Origin: Mytilus edulis
Lineage: Eukaryota
DNA length: 64,000 nucleotides
Assembly: GCF_963676685.1 (NCBI RefSeq)
Contig: NC_092345.1
Span: 104,718,001-104,782,000 of the forward strand
Direction: 5' to 3'
Both the position numbers and the translations under genes were made by a program. This document shows positions 51,901 through 60,900 of this stretch, piece by piece. The notes beneath the pieces were generated by a model, which was not told the DNA's origin, searched no databases, and saw nothing but the letters and a program-made list of their open reading frames with translations. Numbering within the stretch: the stretch's first letter is position 1; each line of letters starts with the position of its first letter.

Positions 51901-54900
51901 CAGAGGTTTGTTTATATCACTGTTTATCAAATTATTCTTAGTAGAGAAAATAAAAAAAATACATATATGTAAAACAACAAATTATGGTTGCAGTCCCTAG
52001 TGTATAAGCAAAAAAATATAAATTATGTATTCCGTACGGAATTCTCTCGACATTGGTGTCCATTTAAAAAACTTCCTGTTTACCGATAAACTTCCTGTTT
52101 GCAGATTTTGGAGCTGAAACTTTTCCGAAAATGTCTAGGAGTATTATATGACCAATAAACTTTTTTCTCTCATTTCTTGAACCACAAAGGGGGTGCGCAC
52201 TATACACACCAAAAGACGGTAGTCAGGAATTTTTGAATTCCCTTCCATACACTGCCATACACAGAACTATTTCCCTTAAAGTTTAGTGCTTTGTTGGTCC
52301 ATGTGTTTATGAAGTCTGATTTTCTTTGCCACATCAGCTTCTCTATCTGTATTCATCCTTCCTGCTTTAAATTGTGTTAAATTTAACCTTTTATGACAAG
52401 ATGGCAGACTTTCGTCAAGCTTATACTTTTTTAATTCATTTGGGAATTCCTTTTTTTTTCTTTTGCAGACCAAGCTCAACAAGAGTACTTCTCCCAGTTC
52501 AAATTTCCTGCTCGACATAATGTGACTTATCATCTATGGTCACTAGGGGCATACAATGTTATGATCAGGTCTGGGTACCATGGATTATATAAAGATACAC
52601 AGCAGAAGGTTAGAAGTTCACTATATTAACAAGTCACGACAGTCACACTATTAACCTCGTCTGTAATAATGGATGTTTGCCAGCTTGACAGCTTAAATGA
52701 TGGAATATTCAATTTGTATTTCAAGACTACACTCTGAAAAATAAGAATAGATCATTTAAACACTGAATACCATCACCAAAAACCAACAAACATTTAAAAA
52801 ATACAAAAAACAAGCAGAATAAAAAAAAACAAGGTGTGACATCACTTAAAACTAAAAGAACAATTCTTTGAAAGATTTTTACAAGGATATATATATTACA
52901 TAAAGAAATATCCCTGTCAAAACAGATACATGTATCTCCCTTTATTGTTGATAATTCCATATTTCAAACTGAAAAGATGTATTAATTTTTTTAAATATTT
53001 AGCTAAATTGTCTCTGAATGACCTAAGATCTGTCTCTAAATAGCCCTTAAGTGGTGTTCAACTAATTAAAACAGTTTCAGTTTCTGAATTTGTAAAAAGA
53101 CATGAAATGAGTTTAATTACACTTAGTCGCCATCATATTTTGACCTTAACTTTTTTACTCATGGTTTTAGATTATTGACAAAATTTTGATTTCATATAAA
53201 GATGAAGAACATGTATATATATATTTAGGTATCTTTTATCCATGTATCTCCTAAGATGGAGTACCAGTCTAATTATGGTATAGAACAGCTGACTGTTAGT
53301 GAGGTATCCAAAGATTGGGCGTCGGCTTATGTCAGACCAAACTGTAAAATAATCAGAGGTATGTCAGACCCAACTGTAAATTATCAGAGGTATACATTTC
53401 TGCTCACCTTAAATTGTGATAAGAGGACAAATTATCTTACCTCCTATACATTTCCAGGAATATGATTGGTTAAAAGCGTCCGCGTGCAAACCGTGTATAT
53501 TTGATATTAGGTTAGTAGGGAGGCAGGGCTTGTCTCATACACGGTTAGTAGTGGAGTTACGTCCCTTTATATTCCTTATTAGGTAAGAAGGGGGCGGGGC
53601 TTATTTCATACACGGTTAGTAATGGTGTTATGTCCCTTTATAAAAAACAAAACGGTACTGAGAATAAATCTTAAAAGTTCCAACAGACGAAGAAATTGAT
53701 GATTAAGATTGAATTAAATTCATTTAAACCTTACAAGTCGTTATTCTTGGCATCTGTTTTTGTAGGATCAATGGAAGTATTTTCTTAGTGCTCACAGTAT
53801 TGAAGACTTGCTCAATTTGAGAATCACTAGTATTAATTTCACCCGTTAAGATAGTCGGTAAGATAAATTCGTTACATAGTGTGCTAGTGACGTAATATGG
53901 TATATATGGGGTCAGTAAATTCCATATGGGGATTCGAGCTTCGCTCTCACCCCATATGGAATTTACTGACCCCATATATACCGTATTAGGTCACTAGCAC
54001 ACTATGTAACTAATAATATTTTATTTTATCTTACCTCCTATACATTTCTATGAATATGATTGGTTAAAAGCGTCCGCGTGCAAACCGTGTATATTCAATA
54101 TTAGGTTAGTAGGGGGGCGGGGCTTATTCCATACACGGTTAGTAGTGGAGTTACGTCCCTTTGTATAGTAAAGATGGCGTCGACGAGAGGTTCGAAACGT
54201 TTCGCAACCACAACAAATGAAGAAATTGATGCAAAAAGATTGAATATTAATGCGGAAAATACCTTAAAAGCAAACAGAAAGTGTGCTAATATACTGCGGG
54301 ACTATCTTCAGGAGAAACAACAAGATGATGAGTTTGAAAAATTTGATTGTGTCCGACTGAATGAGACTCTGTGTCATTTTTATGTCGACCTACGGAAAGG
54401 GGATGGTAAACGATACAAAGCATCGTCACTGGAGTCCATCATGCATGGCATTAACAGATATCTTAAGGCTCCTCCGCACAGTAAAACGTTTGATATTGTG
54501 AAGGATTCTCCATTTAATGACAGTAACGCAAACTTTAAAGCCGTCTTGGCAGAATCGAAACGTTTTGGACTAGGTGACGTTGAACATTTCCCCGTTATTA
54601 ATGAAGTTGATCGTGAAACACTGTATACATCTATGTATCTTTCATCTACAACTCCAACTGGCCTGGCAAATAAAGTTCAGTTTGACATCAGACTTTATTT
54701 TTGCAGAAGAGGAATTGAAAATATGCACAGTATGACCAAATGTACCTTCACAATTAAAACTGACATTAAAACAGGATTAAAATATGTTACTAAGGCAAAA
54801 GATGAACTTACTAAAAACCATAGGGAATCGGATAAGGAGCTTGTCTCTGGAGTAATGCCAGAATCACCAGGTGAGTGTATGACAATAAAGGGGGGGGTGT

Positions 54901-57900
54901 TATTAGACAATTGAAAGGATGAGAAAAAAAAGATAATTAGAACATTACACCATACTAATTGTGTATAAAAAATATATGATAAAATTGAGAATGGAAATGG
55001 GGAATGTGTCAAAGAGATAACAAGCGACCAAATAAAAAACAACAGCATTACTAACTTTATTTCAAATATACAACATTGGCGATTGCCACACAGACATGAA
55101 TGACAATCAATGATATTCCTGAAAATATAAAAACTTAAAACAACAAGTACATTTATTACTATAAATAGTTATGAAAGGTAGCAATATCATTATCTAATTA
55201 TAGACTAAAACAGGAATCTGTAATTTATTGTTGTGTTGTTTATTGCTGTAAGTAAAATGCATATCATACATGTATTTCTCATTTGAATAAATTTACATGT
55301 GTCATTTCGGAACCTTCTACATGTCTGATATATCAATGTAAATACAAGAAATACATATACCCATTGTTGAAGGCTGTACGGTGACCTGTCACTTATAGTT
55401 AAACGTTGTTAATGTCTGTGTCATTTTGGTCTCTTGTGGACAGTTGTCTCATTGGCAATCATACCACATCTTCTTTTTTATATATAGTATCTACATGTAC
55501 GTCTTTGTTGTTGATGTTAAACCTGAAAATATCTAAATGATTACTCTATATTTCAGGATCTGTGTATTGTCCTGTTGCCTCATACGAGAACTATATTCGT
55601 AGATTACATCCATCAAATGATCGTTTATGGCAGAAACCGTTGGATAGTTTTTCCACAGAGGCTGATGTCTGGTATTGTAATATGCCACTAGGAGAAAAAA
55701 AACTAAGTACATTTATGTCAGAACTCAGTAAGAAGTGTAAGTTGTCTATTGTTTATACCAATCACTCAATACGAGCAACTGGAGCCACAGTTTTATCACA
55801 AAACATGTATGGATCTGCGCAAATAATGGCAGTCACTGGGCACAAGTCCGTACAGTCACTCACAACGTACCAGCCTGTTGATACTAACGAGAAAATTAAA
55901 ATGGGTAAAACTATATCTGACAATCTTGTGCAAAGAGCAGTTATTGCTTCCAACCATACATGCAATAGATCCAAAAGTGATGATAGTGGGTCATTTATGG
56001 AACAAATACAAGATATTGACATTGGAGATATTTTAGGAGACTTTGATGACAATGGGCCGAAACCCATCCAATACAGACAAACAACCACATGCATGCAGTC
56101 GACAAAACCTCAGAGTCAGATCTTCTATGGCAATGTTACTGTTATACACAACCTTACCATCAACAAGTAGTTGTGAGAAAATTATCACACTTGTCATGTT
56201 GACATCAACATTTATTTTTCAATTTGTACACAAAAAATGTGTTGCATGTTGACTTCGACACTATTTGTCGCCTAAATGTATTGAACATTTTGTTTTAATT
56301 AATATTGTTATATCAAGGTTATTGATATTAAATTGTTAATGTTGACATTTGTTTTTCTCTTTCAATAAGACCAATGAAAGTAGATTCTTAAAGTTGTAGA
56401 TTTGAACACTTTGATATAAAGACCTGGTATGATTGTAAATGAGACAACTCTAGTTGAGATTCAACAAATAAAGATAGTCGGTAAGATAAATTCGTTACAT
56501 AGTGTGCTAGTAACCTAATACGATATATACGGGGTAAGTAAATTCCATATGGGGTTCGAGCTTCGCTCTCACCCCATATGGAATTTACTAACCCCGTATA
56601 TATCGTATTAGGTCACTAACACACTATGTAACTAATATTCTCTTAAATTAAAAAATAATTCATAGACTTGAATTTATATTGATATTCTTTGTTCAAGCTC
56701 CCATGAATGATTTTTATTCCAGTGCGACACAATTCTTTTTATCATAGTTTATTAATGTTTCCATGTCATTATGACTTTCACTTTCACATTGGTGCATTTT
56801 CATGTAGAATGCTAATATTATTACATCATTGTTCAGTGGTATCATATTTACATATGGGAATATTGATTGGAACACCCCAAATAAATTTTGATGCTGCCAA
56901 TTAGCTGGCATACAATATATTCATATTTTGCCATAGGTGACGTGTGTATTTAAAGCATTTGGAGAATGTGTTATTAGAATGTTTGATTTATTCAAACGAT
57001 TGTACTGTAAATTCACAAATTATTGCTTGCAAAGTAAGTAAGTAAGTATATCATTTATTATAGTGACATGTGTAGTATATATAATATTACATAATAAGAA
57101 TACAATAGTTAAATAAATTTACACCCGGCCCGTTGGACCTATAAGTCACTTTAAACCTAATGTTCAAATTTGCATTACGCAATGTGATTGTTACTTATAA
57201 AGAAGTTCCTTTCTTTTACAGAAAAATAAATTTAAATATTTAGCAGTTTGTCTTTGATGAAGTGTCATTAAATTAGCAAATGTTCTATTATCAATAAAAT
57301 GTCTATCAAGGTTCACTGATTCAAATAATAATTGTCTTAAATTATGGTAAGCTTTACAGTACAACAAGAAATGTTTTTCATCTTCAACAGATCCGTCATC
57401 GCAGAAAGTGCAAAATCGTTCATCAGGAGCCTCATTTCTAAATCGTCCAGTTTCAATGCGTAAGGGTAGAATACCACAGCGAAATTGTGCCATAACTGAT
57501 CGTTCCTGTTTCTTAATGTTCATTTTGACGTAAAGTTCAGTCTCGTACTTCTGTTTAATAGTAATGTAAGTCCTTAATTTGGGTAGAGAAGTGATTTTAC
57601 CAGTCCAATCGTTTTCACAGTATTCCATAATCTTTGTTTTAAAAAGTTCAATGTTGCATAAATTTACATATTCATAGCAACTGTCCATGTCCACTTTGTG
57701 AAAAATTTCCTTCATCTGAGAGCTCCACTGGCCCGATTTATTATAGTTCCAAAGAAAAAGCTTTTCGTTAGTCTATCATTGTCCATTTTAACAAGCCGAT
57801 TCCATCTTCTAACCATAGAAATCCACCGTCTTAAAGTTGGCTGTAACCATCCTAGTTCACTGTTTAGAGAAACTACTGGTGCAAATCTGTGTAATCCCAA

Positions 57901-60900
57901 AAAATATCTAATAGCACGGTTTTGTACAGATTCAATGGAGTGGTATGTTTTATATCCCCAAACATCTGCGCAATAATCGACTGGTACAACACACGACTCG
58001 AAAAGGGTTTCAAATGTTTTAAATGCAACGTCCTTAAAATTGTGAATCTTTGATATCATCCCTCCTAGTGCCCGTCCTCCAGCTTTACCTAATGTTTCGG
58101 TGGCAATACTAAAATCCATTTTATCATTGAAAATAATGCCAAGATATTTGTAGTGACTTACATATTGTAAACTGTTTGGTCCAATCTTGAAATTAAAGTT
58201 GCTTCGTGGGACACGCTGTTTTCTAAAATGCATGACATTTGATTTTGAACAGTTAACACTGAGTCTCCATCGTTGGCACCAACTGTATAACACATCTAAG
58301 CAACGTTGCATATCATTTTCGTTCTCTGTTAGAATAACAATGTCGTCAGCATATAAGAGAAGAATGATTTTCTCATTATCAAAAGGTATTCCAGTTTCTA
58401 GATCTTTTATTTCAGTAGCTAAATCGTTGACAAATAAAGCGAACAATGTAGGCGATAAATTATCCCCTTGGCGTACCCCGTTTGAACACTGGAACCAATT
58501 TGTACGATGATCATTTACGCAGACACATGATTCTGTGTCAATGTATAAGCTAGAAATAGCATTATACATGTTTCCGTCAATACCGTTTAATTGCAGTTTG
58601 TATTGTAATAAATCCCTATCTACATAATCAAATGCTTTTTGCAGGTCCACAAAGGTAGCAAATGTTGATTTCCTATCCTGAATAAGGCAATTCAAAGAAA
58701 ACACATGATCCTCACATGACCTATCTCTTCTAAAACCATTTTGTTCATCAACAATTAATCTGTTGTCTTCTAAAAATTTTTGCACTCGGTTATTTAAAGT
58801 AGAACTGTAACATTTCGCAATTACCGAGAGTAAACTAATCCCTCTGTAATTCATTGGAATTCTCAAGTCAATAGCAGAACCTTTCGGAATTGGTCGAATT
58901 ATTGCTTTCCTCCATAACGACGGAACTTTTCCTGTGTCGAAACAGAACTGAAACAACACCTGCAATAGTTTAATAATTGGTTCATTTTTAAGCACTTCAT
59001 TATAAATTCCATCTATTCCAGGAGCTTTTTTCTCTTTCAAATGTAAAACAACTTTTTGTATTTCGTCTATATGAATGTTCTGATTCAGTATATCATTTGG
59101 TATATACAACGGGTCAAGCATATTATCTTCTAAAAGTCTTTTATGTCATTATGCGTTTTCATAAAATTCATCATCGTAATCGTCCTTGATGTTCATGTAC
59201 AAATTTCTAAAATCGGATTCCCATTTGTTTATCACTGTTTTCTCATCGAATGACGTAGAACCATCGTCATTAACACATTCCATCGGAATAGCATTCTCTT
59301 CTTAGGACCAAGTTTTTGTAATTCTGCACAAAATTTTTTCGAATCTTCTGTATTCAGAGTTTCTATTTGTAAAGATAAATCCTGCTTATATTTCCGTTCA
59401 TGAAATCGTAAACGCTTATCGAATTTCTTTTACGCCATAACAAATTTGTCCCGTGTCTCACGTTTCGCTTTACTGGTTCTAGATTTCCTAAATTGTTTTT
59501 CGCAACTGTGCATAGTTACCCATAAATCACTTAATTCTTGATTCCAGAATGGTTTTTCGTGTTTAAAATGTTTTCTTGTTTTTCTAGACGCCTCATGATA
59601 TGGTATTGTTTCTTCCATTTCTTTTTTAACAAGTTTGCATAATTCTTCGTAGACCGTATCAATGTCTTCTTGCTGTTCTCTGCACAGTTCAATTTGACGA
59701 ATAACCATATGTTTAGCCTCTTTCGTGATGTCGGAGCACATAAAGTTTGACAGTATTTCTTTAAATCTGAATCTTTTCTTTGTCGACAAAACGTTATGTT
59801 TCACATTTTCAGATTTAATTATTAAGTTTTCGACATAATCTAATATTGCAATTAGTTTGGCATTTTTTTTTTTAAAGATGACAAAAATGCAAATTTATTT
59901 ATCACGATTTCAGGAAAATAAGCATACAGATATAGTCATCAAATTCTTAATACAGATTCTTATTATTGCAGTACTCATCCACTTGCATTATCTCCATGAA
60001 TAAAAACCCTGCAATAGTTCTTGAATTCACAGTATGTAGATTAACACATGTTGTTTAGAGTGAAACTAAATTAATCTGAACTGACTTTTTATTCTATTTC
60101 AGCCAGAGTCAATCCTTTGCAATCAGATATTGTCTCTATGAAGGAAGAAGAATTAAGTAAAATGTCAACAATTTCTCATGGTTTTAAGTAAGTTACTTTA
60201 AAAGTAATTGACTTTCAAAAAAGATCTGTTTATTATCTGATTATATTTGATTTCAAGTGTAATAGATTATTTTCATATTACTGACAGAATTGTTTAACAT
60301 TTGAATACCAGTGCACCTCAACTGATAACCTCCATGTCACCTTGAGTTTAATAAGGAAGAAATGACAGCTACATGTGTTTTAATTTTAAAATTGTTAAGA
60401 ATTTCTTCATCATTTTTTTCAGTCCCGCCAATGGATTTCAGATGTTAGCCAATGTGTTCCATAGACTTCATCAGTAAGTATTATTCATTGTTGTCCAGCC
60501 TGCAACTTTTGTTGCAGAAAGCTCGACATAGGGTTAGTGATCCGGCAGCGGCGGCGTTAGCTCACTTCTTAAAAGCTTTATATTTTAGAAGGTGGAAGAC
60601 CTGGATGCTTCATACTTTGTATATAGATGCTTCATGTTACGAAGTTTCTGTCTGTCACAGGTCCAATGTCCTTGACCTCATTTTCATGGTTCAGTGACCA
60701 CTTGAATGTTGAATTCTCTCTTATTATAAGTAATAGGATAACTATATTTGATATGTGCGTACCTTGCAAGGTCCTCATGTCTGTCAGACAGTTTTCACTT
60801 GACCTCGACCTCATTTTCATGGATCAGTGAACAAGGTTAAGTTTTGGTGGTCAAGTCCATATCTCAGATACTATAAGCAATAGGGCTAGTATATTCGGTG

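Follow-up and report, generated by a model that had tools for sequence, protein, structure and literature searches.

The segment from 53432 to 56637 of the window, that is, the whole 64,000-nucleotide stretch of Mytilus edulis DNA analysed here, consists of two neighbouring copies of one family of Mytilus DNA transposons of the Crypton kind, with a tyrosine recombinase of the CryptonA/DUF3504 type. With respect to the way in which this family moves, the reading that we favour, and consider probable, is that of a Crypton in which a folded strand would serve as the recombination site, similarly to integron attC or CTX phage. The terminal hairpin of these elements (~150 bases) seems to rebuild the recombination site by folding, a capacity not described for this class of eukaryotic transposons; in the literature, we found no published description of this hairpin.

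Two adjacent copies of one transposon family

The preliminary description treated 53432-56637 as a single element and took the TTATCTTACC at 53432 for the 5' end of the recombinase-bearing unit. Instead, two elements are present, each with its own TTATCTTACC, GGTAAGATAA and palindrome, and position 53432 begins a separate 584-bp deletion derivative (53432-54015, forward strand). This non-autonomous copy arose by internal deletion from the autonomous element, of which it retains the 5' 141 nt and the 3' ~190 nt, together with an additional copy of a 53-nt repeat and a trace of the ORF start at 53681-53701. Its 5' subterminal inverted repeat TTATCTTACC lies at 53432-53441 and its 3' subterminal repeat GGTAAGATAA at 53857-53866, both on the forward strand, followed by the terminal palindrome (53867-54014; 65-nt arms, 95% complementary) and a terminal CTAATA ending at 54015. 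The two copies are separated by 10 bp of host DNA, ATATTTTATT (54016-54025), a spacer that begins with ATAT and fits the 3'-flank rule given below. The intact autonomous element then occupies 54026-56637 (2,612 bp, forward strand), limits that are set by a second intact copy on another chromosome (C10:60334616-60337231), since the flanks of the latter diverge exactly at 54025/54026 and 56637/56638.

The autonomous element opens with its 5' subterminal repeat TTATCTTACC (54026-54035, forward strand, imperfect as far as 54041), the first four bases of which, TTAT, correspond to the WTAY arm of the core site discussed below. A 53-nt G-rich repeat unit follows at 54113-54165 (forward strand), in one copy here and in two in the short element. 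Signals read from the sequences, both on the forward strand, are GATTGG, an inverted CCAAT box (54058-54063) located 33-38 nt from the 5' end and at an equal distance from it in families A, D and M, and an AATAAA polyadenylation signal (56467-56472) just upstream of the 3' repeat. The sole gene of this copy encodes the recombinase in 436 codons plus a stop, distributed over two exons of the forward strand. Exon 1 (54174-54870) includes the core-binding/QRICH1-like region as well as the Arg of box I (FCRRGIEN) and the Lys of TKNHR; the intron (54871-55556, GT..AG, phase 1) is also present in the C10 copy; and exon 2 (55557-56170) supplies HSIR, GHK, the catalytic Tyr and a poorly conserved C-terminal tail, with the TAG stop codon at 56168-56170. 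The spliced 436-residue recombinase that had been noticed at the outset is thereby confirmed in its ORF, its intron and its complete set of motifs (FCRRGxEN, TKNHR, HSIR, GHK and the final Y). DUF3504 scores above the Pfam cut-off in three intronless paralogues, the predicted fold matches QRICH1, Cre, XerH, lambda Int and Tn1549 Int, and the recombinase of the C10 copy differs at 8 residues. The protein is a CryptonA/DUF3504-type tyrosine recombinase.

At the other end, the 3' subterminal repeat GGTAAGATAA (56480-56489, forward strand) is followed by ATTC, and the 10-bp inverted repeats originally reported are real; together with ATTC-GTTA, up to 56497, this repeat forms the motif GATAAATTCGTTA, which occupies invariant columns of the alignment. 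The 3' end of the family reads GATAAATTCGTTA...GTAACTAATA. The palindrome proper, GTTAC...GTAAC, spans 56494-56632, and its consensus fold comprises 61 base pairs; a repeat search delimits 72-nt arms at 56490-56561 and 56565-56636 (92% complementary), within which the arms first recognized at 56494-56554 and 56572-56632 are nested. Its apex module, on the reverse strand at 56558-56568, reads TC-GAGC-TTC-GCTC-TC on the top strand and GA-GAGC-GAA-GCTC-GA on the bottom strand, the latter giving a GAA triloop with tandem G.A mismatches on either side. The element ends in a 5-nt tail, TAATA (56633-56637, forward strand; flank TTCT), which with the C at 56632 makes up the hexamer CTAATA, the N6 of the core.

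Family layout, target sites and junctions

Both ends of the family recur ~1,800-2,300 times genome-wide, far above chance, and the family includes ~2,000 MITE-like derivatives, with lengths of roughly 516 and 565-595 bp. As for the possibility, raised in the preliminary description, that the palindrome is a separate MITE, it nearly always accompanies the same 5' end: among 54 sampled copies, which are the best BLAST matches and hence a non-random sample, the palindrome end lies 448-601 bp downstream of the 5' end in 47, and 5 more are full-length copies. The order of parts in every copy is a 10-16-nt 5'-terminal repeat, its complement ~155 nt from the 3' end, ATTC, a ~140-nt palindrome and a 5-nt tail. 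An identical layout is found in at least four other Mytilus families with 41-67% amino acid identity, the families that share it being A (67%), B (57%), D (53%), L056 and L058; in family B, the gene is inverted relative to the ends and the palindrome is located upstream of it. The same layout recurs in a metagenomic family (M; 36% amino acid identity, 1,793 bp), represented by five palindrome-terminated copies that are 99.5-99.9% alike across exactly 1,793 bp. Family E keeps the 3' terminal sequence, but tandem repeats stand where the other families have the palindrome, which may therefore be dispensable.

The target sites, for which 54 independent flanks were read per side, fit a 14-bp core, RTAW-N6|WTAY. 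The 5' flank has R at -10 in 51/54, A at -8 in 48/54 and W at -7 in 50/54, and the 3' flank has T at +2 in 51/54, A at +3 in 39/54 and T at +4 in 46/54. Insertions of the family lack a target-site duplication, and those into two tandem-repeat hosts are precise. Family D follows the same target rule; the four independent flanks of family M do not show this register of the motif. Joining of the element ends would give GTAA-CTAATA|TTAT, the same core as that of the targets, and the element therefore recombines the junction of its own two ends with genomic sites that resemble it, which is the usual behaviour of tyrosine recombinases. The chromosomes contain head-to-tail junctions, CTAATA|TTATC, at 8 loci. 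The recombinases of Tn916 and CTnDOT similarly tolerate non-identical 6-7-bp sequences between the cleavage points, but coupling sequences in those elements are found on either side, whereas in the Mytilus family the hexamer of the target invariably lies on the 5' side (51 distinct hexamers among 54 flanks) and CTAATA on the 3' side (51 of 53 ends), a single junction type being found.

The palindrome as a putative folded recombination site

The arm sequences of the palindrome diverge between families yet remain complementary. In the alignment across families, 96.1% of the cells of the 61 pairs are paired, and changes on both sides are observed in 32 of these pairs, vs 9.1 +/- 2.0 in shuffles, of which 0/500 attain 32, and 6-14 in slid controls, with G-T-type intermediates nearly absent (4/789 cells). 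Compensatory evolution that maintains self-complementarity across families and phyla supports the folded form. So does the strand bias of the mismatches: over 20 palindromes, the top strand has 66 T.C/C.T against 13 G.A/A.G mismatches, mostly tandem, and on the bottom strand these turn into G.A pairs of the sheared type. The GAA/GNA loop of the apex also sits on the bottom strand; calculated stability favours this strand in 13/19 palindromes, which is not significant. Joined ends are predicted to fold into one continuous hairpin in all five families, with the junction at an asymmetric bulge. Moreover, the invariant GATAAATTCGTTA is complementary to the core of the joined ends and would face that core only when the strand is folded, which lends further support to the folded form.

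In the mechanism that we propose, the palindrome would form an intrastrand hairpin, most likely of the bottom strand, in which the fold would place the invariant internal ATAA-ATTC-GTTAC opposite GTAAC-TAATA|TTAT. A single folded strand would build a duplex-like core site with two arms and a partly mismatched 6-nt centre, the cleaved bond lying where the repeat stem meets the asymmetric bulge. The recombinase would exchange that strand alone, at N6|WTAY, and replication would complete the insertion, as in integron attC x attI recombination and CTX-phage integration. From the usual 5'-stagger polarity of tyrosine recombinases, and with N6 read as the overlap region, we infer that the exchanged strand is the bottom one. 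Such a mechanism could account for the fixed sides of the target hexamer and CTAATA, for the multiplication of the element and for the marks on one strand of the hairpin (tandem G.A pairs and GAA loop), and a single junction type is expected from a single strand exchange. Mobilization through a hairpin, cruciform or single-stranded intermediate, as initially suggested, is favoured by four independent lines of sequence evidence, the mechanism as such being a matter of inference.

Against this model, arm-to-arm copying or repair can hold a palindrome symmetric without selection for a hairpin, and a one-sided junction could arise if the second exchange were blocked on ordinary double-stranded DNA.

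Among known systems, integron attC and CTX-phage attP(+) are recombined as folded single strands by the tyrosine recombinases IntI and XerCD. The parallels include an imperfect hairpin (predicted, in Mytilus) in which one strand gives both core-site halves around a mismatched centre, strand-specific irregularities that mark the strand used, products that fit one strand exchange followed by replication, and variable sequence with conserved structure. These sites are bacterial, whereas the present family belongs to an animal nuclear genome; its stem is ~70 bp, and it is marked by tandem G.A pairs and a GAA loop rather than by extrahelical bases. The IS200/IS605 elements (IS608) share subterminal hairpins, a strand-specific logic and precise, duplication-free insertion beside a short conserved target motif that stays at one end, but IS608 employs an HUH Y1 transposase and has ~20-nt hairpins at both ends.

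Alternative explanations and related elements

The family resembles Cryptons (CryptonA/DUF3504; Goodwin 2003; Kojima and Jurka 2011, PMC3212892; Glomhopper 2026, PMC13465315) in its single tyrosine recombinase gene with DUF3504 and QRICH1-like regions, in the absence of reverse transcriptase, DDE transposase and target-site duplication, in an element start, TTAT, that is similar to the 3' flank [A/T]TAT (cf. the short terminal direct repeats of fungal Cryptons), and in non-autonomous derivatives that outnumber autonomous copies. In animal Cryptons, terminal repeats, direct or inverted, are reported to be absent or poorly conserved (PMC3212892, PMC13465315), whereas the Mytilus family has inverted repeats in subterminal position, ends in a conserved palindrome of ~150 nt, carries an internal motif that is an invariant complement of the junction and inserts into a target core defined over 14 bp. 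Conceivably, an ordinary Crypton mechanism operates nonetheless: a double-stranded circle would be excised, its GTAA-CTAATA|TTAT junction would recombine with RTAW-N6|WTAY sites as a normal duplex core site, and the palindrome would be accessory, acting for example as a second inverted synapsis site, a bend or enhancer, an origin of circle replication or an insulator. We regard this as possible but rather unlikely. It agrees with the general view of Crypton movement (PMC3212892), with the canonical inverted-arm core and 6-bp centre common to joined ends and targets, with the chromosomal head-to-tail dimers and with the lack of a palindrome in family E, and overlap heterology alone could block the second exchange and leave one junction type. 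However, it leaves unexplained the strand-biased mismatches (66 vs 13) between arms that never meet in duplex DNA, the GAA apex loop on one strand, the covariation of 32/61 arm pairs and, unless the DNA folds, a 3' cleavage point ~150 bp from the nearest repeat.

The palindrome might instead act as RNA, for example by serving stability or export as a 3'-UTR stem-loop, or by giving rise, as a hairpin precursor, to small RNAs through which the family is silenced or regulated. Small-RNA pathways can be supplied by long hairpins within transposon transcripts, and the palindrome does lie downstream of the ORF. Nevertheless, this is improbable: AATAAA is located just 5' of the palindrome, which is therefore probably outside the mRNA; the palindrome is the exact terminus even in gene-less copies and, in family B, is upstream of the gene and inverted relative to it; G-U-type intermediates are nearly absent from the covariation; and the tandem mismatches are of the G.A kind, which is typical of DNA.

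A very improbable alternative is a non-autonomous element of the rolling-circle, Rep/helicase Helentron type with the recombinase as captured cargo. The likeness pointed out in the preliminary description holds for the order of parts, given that Helentrons, HINEs and DINE-1 (PMC4067079; oyster Cg_HINE, PMC7492417) have a 5' subterminal repeat that is followed, near the 3' end, by its complement and then by a palindrome and a short tail, together with no target duplication and MITE-like copies that are abundant in bivalves. The resemblance is, however, confined to layout. Helentrons encode an HUH Rep/helicase/endonuclease, their palindromes are 5-10 bp, vs arms of 61-72 nt here, and they target a TT dinucleotide, in contrast to the dyad RTAW-N6|WTAY that mirrors the joined ends, which are devoid of T runs. 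Furthermore, the recombinase is the only gene in full-length copies, and gene and ends diverge jointly through at least five Mytilus families and the 36%-identical family of another organism, a pattern for which capture cannot account.

TelN, ResT and related enzymes have the tyrosine-recombinase catalytic fold and act on palindromes, but a route of this kind, mentioned at the outset, in which the recombinase would cut the palindrome and seal closed hairpin ends into a linear intermediate, is a poor fit and most implausible, because such resolvases cut the palindrome centre whereas the element boundary is here the outer edge of the palindrome (54/54 copies and five families), the palindrome is at one end only, and its apex, which is asymmetric, is conserved and does not flip-flop between copies of the family.

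Two neighbouring copies and the genomic census

The preliminary description took the interval 53432-56637 for a single element; the recombinase ORF, the repeats and the palindrome that it named are all found in the window sequence, but internal repeats and comparison with a copy on scaffold C10 reveal two copies separated by 10 bp of host DNA. The 5′ block TTATCTTACC together with 131 more bases occurs at 53432 and again at 54026 (93% alike), and the 3′ ~200 bases, including the palindrome, occur at both 53827-54015 and 56450-56637 (repeat search). Because the 5′ and 3′ ends are each present twice, the interval is resolved into a deletion derivative of 584 bp (53432-54015), host DNA (ATATTTTATT, 10 bp) and a full-length element of 2,612 bp (54026-56637). 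The boundaries of the latter agree with the second full-length copy (C10:60334616-60337231), which matches from 54026 to 56637 and diverges completely beyond both points. At the 3′ end, the repeat GGTAAGATAA (56480-56489) is followed by ATTC and then by the terminal palindrome, for which the repeat search yields 72-nt arms at 56490-56561 and 56565-56636 (92% matched); the element terminus reads ...GTAAC-TAATA, with 56637 as the last base. The two-exon recombinase gene is the only content of the 2,612-bp element, as it is of the 1,793-bp metagenomic family M, and no Rep/helicase, reverse transcriptase or DDE transposase is encoded in the full-length copies.

Between the 5′ repeat and the ATG lies a 53-nt G-rich unit, GGGGGCGGGGCTTAT...CCCTTTATA (window 53519-53642 and 54113-54165), which may be a promoter or protein-binding module. 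The autonomous element and the MITEs of ~516 bp have one copy of the unit, and the subfamily of ~590 bp has two. The motif GATTGG, an inverted CCAAT box (window 54058-54063), recurs at the same offset in other fetched loci (L041/L042, L059/L060 and L097) and four families, the metagenomic one included, have it 33-38 nt in from the 5′ terminus; family B, in which the gene is inverted, has a CCAAT motif near the same end, ~80 nt in and in the opposite orientation. The motif could serve a promoter or act as an accessory site in recombination. Directly upstream of the short copy, two tandem repeats of a 32-nt unit (TATGTCAGACC.AACTGTAAA.TA.TCAGAGG; window 53328-53393) are host or other-repeat sequence. 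About 550 bp downstream of the Crypton, on the minus strand (window 57194-59121), a 469-aa ORF gives a strong match to the RVT_1 reverse-transcriptase domain (E 4e-39); a 174-aa ORF in the same orientation comes after it and has no Pfam match, the two ORFs probably being part of a non-LTR retrotransposon.

Across the genome surveyed (1.37 Gb, 14 large scaffolds), a first look gave 2,347 candidates for the 3′ end and 1,810 for the 5′ end. The protein of one paralogue shares 99% identity with a database entry from Mytilus edulis, which places the genome in this species or a very near relative. Sixty fetched loci, in which the sampled copies are the best-matching ones and not random, contain 54 distinct 5′ ends and 54 distinct 3′ ends. 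In 47 of the 54 cases the 5′ end is paired with a palindrome end at 448-601 bp, with size classes near 516 and 565-595 bp; five of the remaining 5′ ends belong to full-length copies and the few others are cut off or run off the locus. Given this pairing, which holds in the 47 sampled copies and in the five full-length ones, the palindrome is not an independent MITE, and the first of the objections that the preliminary description had raised against its own reading falls. About nine copies retain recombinase sequence at ≥89% identity, and two of these are intact. One locus with several 5′ ends, at C1:29.09 Mb, proved to be a duplicated, truncated and rearranged copy: two truncated copies without the palindrome end lie 5.2 kb apart inside a segmental duplication (C1:29090336-29100646; L033, L034, L064-L066), and one of them abuts an inverted 226-bp 5′ fragment of another copy.

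The recombinase gene and its ends

The recombinase is encoded in two exons (54174-54870 and 55557-56170) with a phase-1 GT..AG intron between them; when joined, these give 436 codons with one terminal stop (local frame check). The catalytic set R..K..HxxR..H/W..Y is complete, with FCRRGIEN and TKNHR in exon 1 and HSIR, GHK and the tyrosine in exon 2, and an alignment of 17 proteins shows little or no variation at the Arg of CRRGxEN, the Lys of TKNHR, HxxR, the His of GHK and the Tyr. In profile and similarity searches the exons were taken separately, and intronless paralogues stood in for the spliced protein. Singly, the window exons fall under the Pfam cut-offs (QRICH1 domain 7e-6, Phage_integrase 4.5e-5, DUF3504 1e-3); three intronless paralogues (53-57% identical) reach 30.4, 35.5 and 43.0 bits for DUF3504 (PF12012; cut-off 29.7) and score almost at the Phage_integrase cut-off. 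Moreover, an AlphaFold model of the family D paralogue (mean pLDDT 73) has QRICH1 as its top structural match (9hjt_H, E 8e-10) and also matches Cre, XerH, lambda Int and Tn1549 Int. The protein is a CryptonA/DUF3504-type recombinase. Database searches recover homologues in oysters, scallop, pearl oyster, Littorina, Mercenaria and the hydrozoan Clytia, under names such as KIAA1958-like, ZMYM2-like/QRICH1 and KCTD1_15. The vertebrate genes ZMYM2-4, QRICH1 and KIAA1958 derive from this recombinase family, and the DNA substrate of the recombinase may inform what the respective proteins bind. In the C10 copy the reading frame and splice sites are likewise intact, with 8 residues differing from the window copy; the 12 exon substitutions between the two intact copies, 8 of them non-synonymous, are too few to distinguish from neutrality.

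Exon 2 has at least 405 matches in the genome, and the loci fetched include divergent families with open frames, in which the ends can be compared along with the gene. Family A (67% amino acid identity) starts with TTATCCTGATTT and carries AAATCAGGATAA-ATTC followed by a 149-nt palindrome; family D (53%) has the 5′ terminal repeat ATATTACGGATTAC and family B (57%) the 5′ repeat TTGTGCGGTTATGC, each with its complement ahead of the palindrome, the gene of family B being inverted relative to the ends. Two further families, L056 (54%) and L058 (41-62%), have palindromes of 150 and 134 nt, respectively, with the outer bases unchanged. Metagenome contigs contain relatives at 30-38% identity with palindromes of 130-165 nt located ~340 nt past the ORF. 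Among these, family M is represented by five copies with differing flanks that are 99.5-99.9% identical across exactly 1,793 bp, starting with A-TTATTATACAAT and finishing with ATTGTATAATAA-AA, a 160-nt palindrome and CTTAATA. The same end plan across divergent genes indicates that gene and ends diverged jointly over a long time, and it is chiefly this joint divergence that speaks for the recombinase being the transposase rather than cargo.

Two of the family M copies (L098, OFER01009114.1, and L100, OFEW01001748.1) share an identical 5′ flank and have different 3′ flanks, which could reflect an assembly variant, an allele that received another insertion, or a 3′-end rearrangement. A family at 58% identity (L046:2300-2710 and L047, in gene-oriented coordinates; C6:5.00 Mb and C12:4.41 Mb) has the last 14 bases of the window element (CTATGTAACTAATA), with ~75-nt tandem repeats in place of the palindrome; it may be a palindrome-less or degenerate variant, and it bears on whether the hairpin is indispensable.

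Target core and terminal hairpin

No target-site duplication was detected for k = 2-8 in comparison with shuffled partners, and in two insertions within tandem-repeat hosts (AATA|ATGG and CATA|TTAT) the host periodicity runs unbroken across the element. In 54 independent flanks per side (background A.36, C.14, G.15, T.34), the 5′ side favors R at -10 (51/54), T at -9 (32/54), A at -8 (48/54) and W at -7 (50/54), positions -6 to -1 being uninformative, and the 3′ side favors A, T or G at +1 (52/54), T at +2 (51/54), A at +3 (39/54) and T at +4 (46/54); there are no further informative positions out to -26 or +30 in the same flanks. At +1, 31 of 54 flanks have A, and at -1 only 28 of 54 have T. 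This consensus defines the target as RTAW-N6|WTAY, that is, inverted 4-bp arms and a 6-bp centre. Two inverted arms around a short centre are the standard core site of tyrosine recombinases. The targets lack a second, symmetric WTAY arm at 15-18 nt downstream of where the element inserts. The element's own ends, if joined, would read GTAA-CTAATA|TTAT, the same formula as the target, and family D also fits the formula (ATAA-CATATA|, element start ATAT, -10 flanks ATAA or ATAT). The element start TTAT and the 3′ flank (A/T/G)TAT make an imperfect 3-4-bp direct repeat.

The hexamer on the 5′ side is highly variable (51 distinct among 54), and that at the 3′ end is CTAATA in 51 of 53 copies. When both strands are exchanged 6 bp apart over a non-identical centre, as in Tn916, half of the products are expected to have the target hexamer at the 3′ end; none of the sampled copies does. 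The perfect junction CTAATA|TTATC is present in the chromosome at 8 loci, with 2 more loci having a TT spacer, and at one head-to-tail locus two short copies, 96.6% alike, form a dimer. Such dimers are to be expected because every resident 3′ junction is itself a good target.

An alignment of 13 ends, from three subfamilies of the element's own family and three other families, yields a consensus fold of 61 pairs for the palindrome, with 96.1% of the cells paired. Changes on both sides affect 32 pairs, compared with 9.1 +/- 2.0 in shuffles (0/500) and 6-14 with a slid partner, and the presence of just 4 cells with G-T-type intermediates argues against an RNA structure. None of the 13 ends has a change in the block GATAAATTCGTTA, which adjoins the palindrome on its left, despite the non-terminal position of this block. 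Furthermore, in 20 palindromes the arm mismatches on the top strand are T.C/C.T in 66 cases versus G.A/A.G in 13, mostly in adjacent pairs, which amounts to tandem G.A pairs on the bottom strand. Since the arms never face each other in duplex DNA, such a bias makes sense only with one strand self-folded. At the apex, the central module between the arms, the window element reads TC-GAGC-TTC-GCTC-TC on top and GA-GAGC-GAA-GCTC-GA on the bottom, that is, a GAA triloop between G.A pairs; a GAA/GNA apex loop is found on the bottom strand in every family but one, and the GAA module is shared by family M and others. By computed folding energy, the bottom strand is favored in 13 of 19 palindromes, a difference that is not significant and does not separate the strands.

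In family A (L040:2840-2870, C7:82.14 Mb) the GC-rich apex module as a whole has the orientation opposite to that in all other families, with the G.A/A.G mismatches and GGCAAAGCC on the top strand, an arrangement suggestive of a single ancient flip of the loop. Within the element's own family, no flip-flop of the apex is seen from copy to copy, minus-strand matches being uniformly weaker.

Proposed transposition route and its alternatives

The element is of the Crypton type, with exact ends, a dyad target that mirrors the joined ends, no duplication and a single junction type, and its terminal hairpin covaries and is strand-marked. We place high confidence in the identification as a Crypton-type element and consider it probable that the palindrome acts in cis in transposition; the chances that a folded form, hairpin or cruciform, is used appear evenly balanced, and single-strand exchange is a more tentative suggestion. 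With the ends joined, the 5′ repeat would pair with its internal complement and lengthen the palindrome into one hairpin, and in the joined-end folds of all five families tested the presumed cleaved bond is at the edge of an asymmetric bulge. The invariant ATAA-ATTC-GTTAC would then face GTAAC-TAATA|TTAT, so that one strand could give two duplex arms and a partly mismatched centre; in integron attC and CTX attP(+), one strand likewise supplies duplex arms around a mismatched centre. Two traits of attC/CTX-type sites have counterparts here: a hairpin that rebuilds a duplex-like core with a mismatched centre is seen in the folds of the five families, the covariation and GATAAATTCGTTA, and strand-selective marks are seen in the mismatch bias and the bottom-strand apex loop. 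For a third trait, a reaction on single-stranded DNA with one exchange that replication resolves, the single junction type may be an indirect signature.

Tyrosine recombinases act through a 3′-phosphotyrosine and with a 5′ stagger polarity. By analogy with this polarity, a crossover at N6|WTAY would be a bottom-strand event, and the G.A pairs and the GAA loop are found on this same strand. Exchange of a single strand with subsequent replication could generate the observed products and would allow the copy number to grow. We tentatively propose that a widespread animal Crypton branch (mussels, other molluscs and cnidarian-type metagenome hosts) transposes via the folded bottom strand, with replication finishing the insertion: a bottom-strand hairpin of ~150 nt would pair the internal junction copy with the real junction, building the recombination site, and that strand alone would be exchanged. 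If true, integron attC and CTX-phage recombination would have a counterpart in eukaryotes for the first time, extending a bacterial way of DNA recombination to animals, and a tyrosine-recombinase transposon would have a copy-and-paste route that would explain how such an element reached thousands of copies.

Of the classes of eukaryotic DNA transposons, Cryptons are the least understood, with ends that have been called featureless; we know of no test of their mechanism and, for the animal groups, of no defined recombination site. The present family supplies exact termini, two intact recombinase genes, young derivatives in the thousands, a 14-bp target core mirroring the joined ends and a conserved hairpin marked strand-specifically, which makes the mechanism directly testable with oligonucleotides and purified protein. 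By definition, Cryptons have no long terminal repeats and no true target-site duplication, and their ends carry at most 4-6-bp direct crossover repeats; the subterminal inverted repeat and terminal palindrome described here go beyond this published definition. A search confined to full-text literature found no description of a terminal palindrome in Cryptons, and animal Cryptons, including 50 copies of one insect family, were described as lacking both direct and inverted terminal repeats (Kojima and Jurka 2011, PMC3212892).

Among the alternatives, movement through a double-stranded circle, with the palindrome as an accessory, would agree with the classical Crypton route. Cryptons are held to move via an excised circle. 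We regard this route as unlikely here, given that it accounts for neither the strand bias nor the internal complement. An RNA-level role of the palindrome is very improbable, being contradicted by the poly(A) signal ahead of the palindrome, by the presence of the palindrome in copies without the gene, by the inverted gene of family B and by the lack of G-U intermediates. A telomere-resolvase route is barely credible, as the element boundary coincides with the edge of the palindrome and not with its centre.

Helentrons and HINEs have the same order of parts, namely subterminal inverted repeats of 12-15 bp, the 3′ one followed by a palindrome of 5-10 bp in the last ~60 bp; however, the palindrome arms of our element are 61-72 nt long and its 3′ repeat is ~155 nt from the end. 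Autonomous Helentrons encode Rep/helicase, with or without an endonuclease, whereas the full-length copies encode the tyrosine recombinase only, and Helentrons insert between two T residues and have T runs at their termini, in contrast to the RTAW-N6|WTAY target found here. Mobilisation as a Helentron, with the recombinase gene as captured cargo, is contradicted by this gene content, by the dyad target and by the co-divergence of gene and ends, and is extremely unlikely. For bivalve MITEs with a subterminal repeat and a 3′ palindrome, structure alone is insufficient for assignment to Helentrons.
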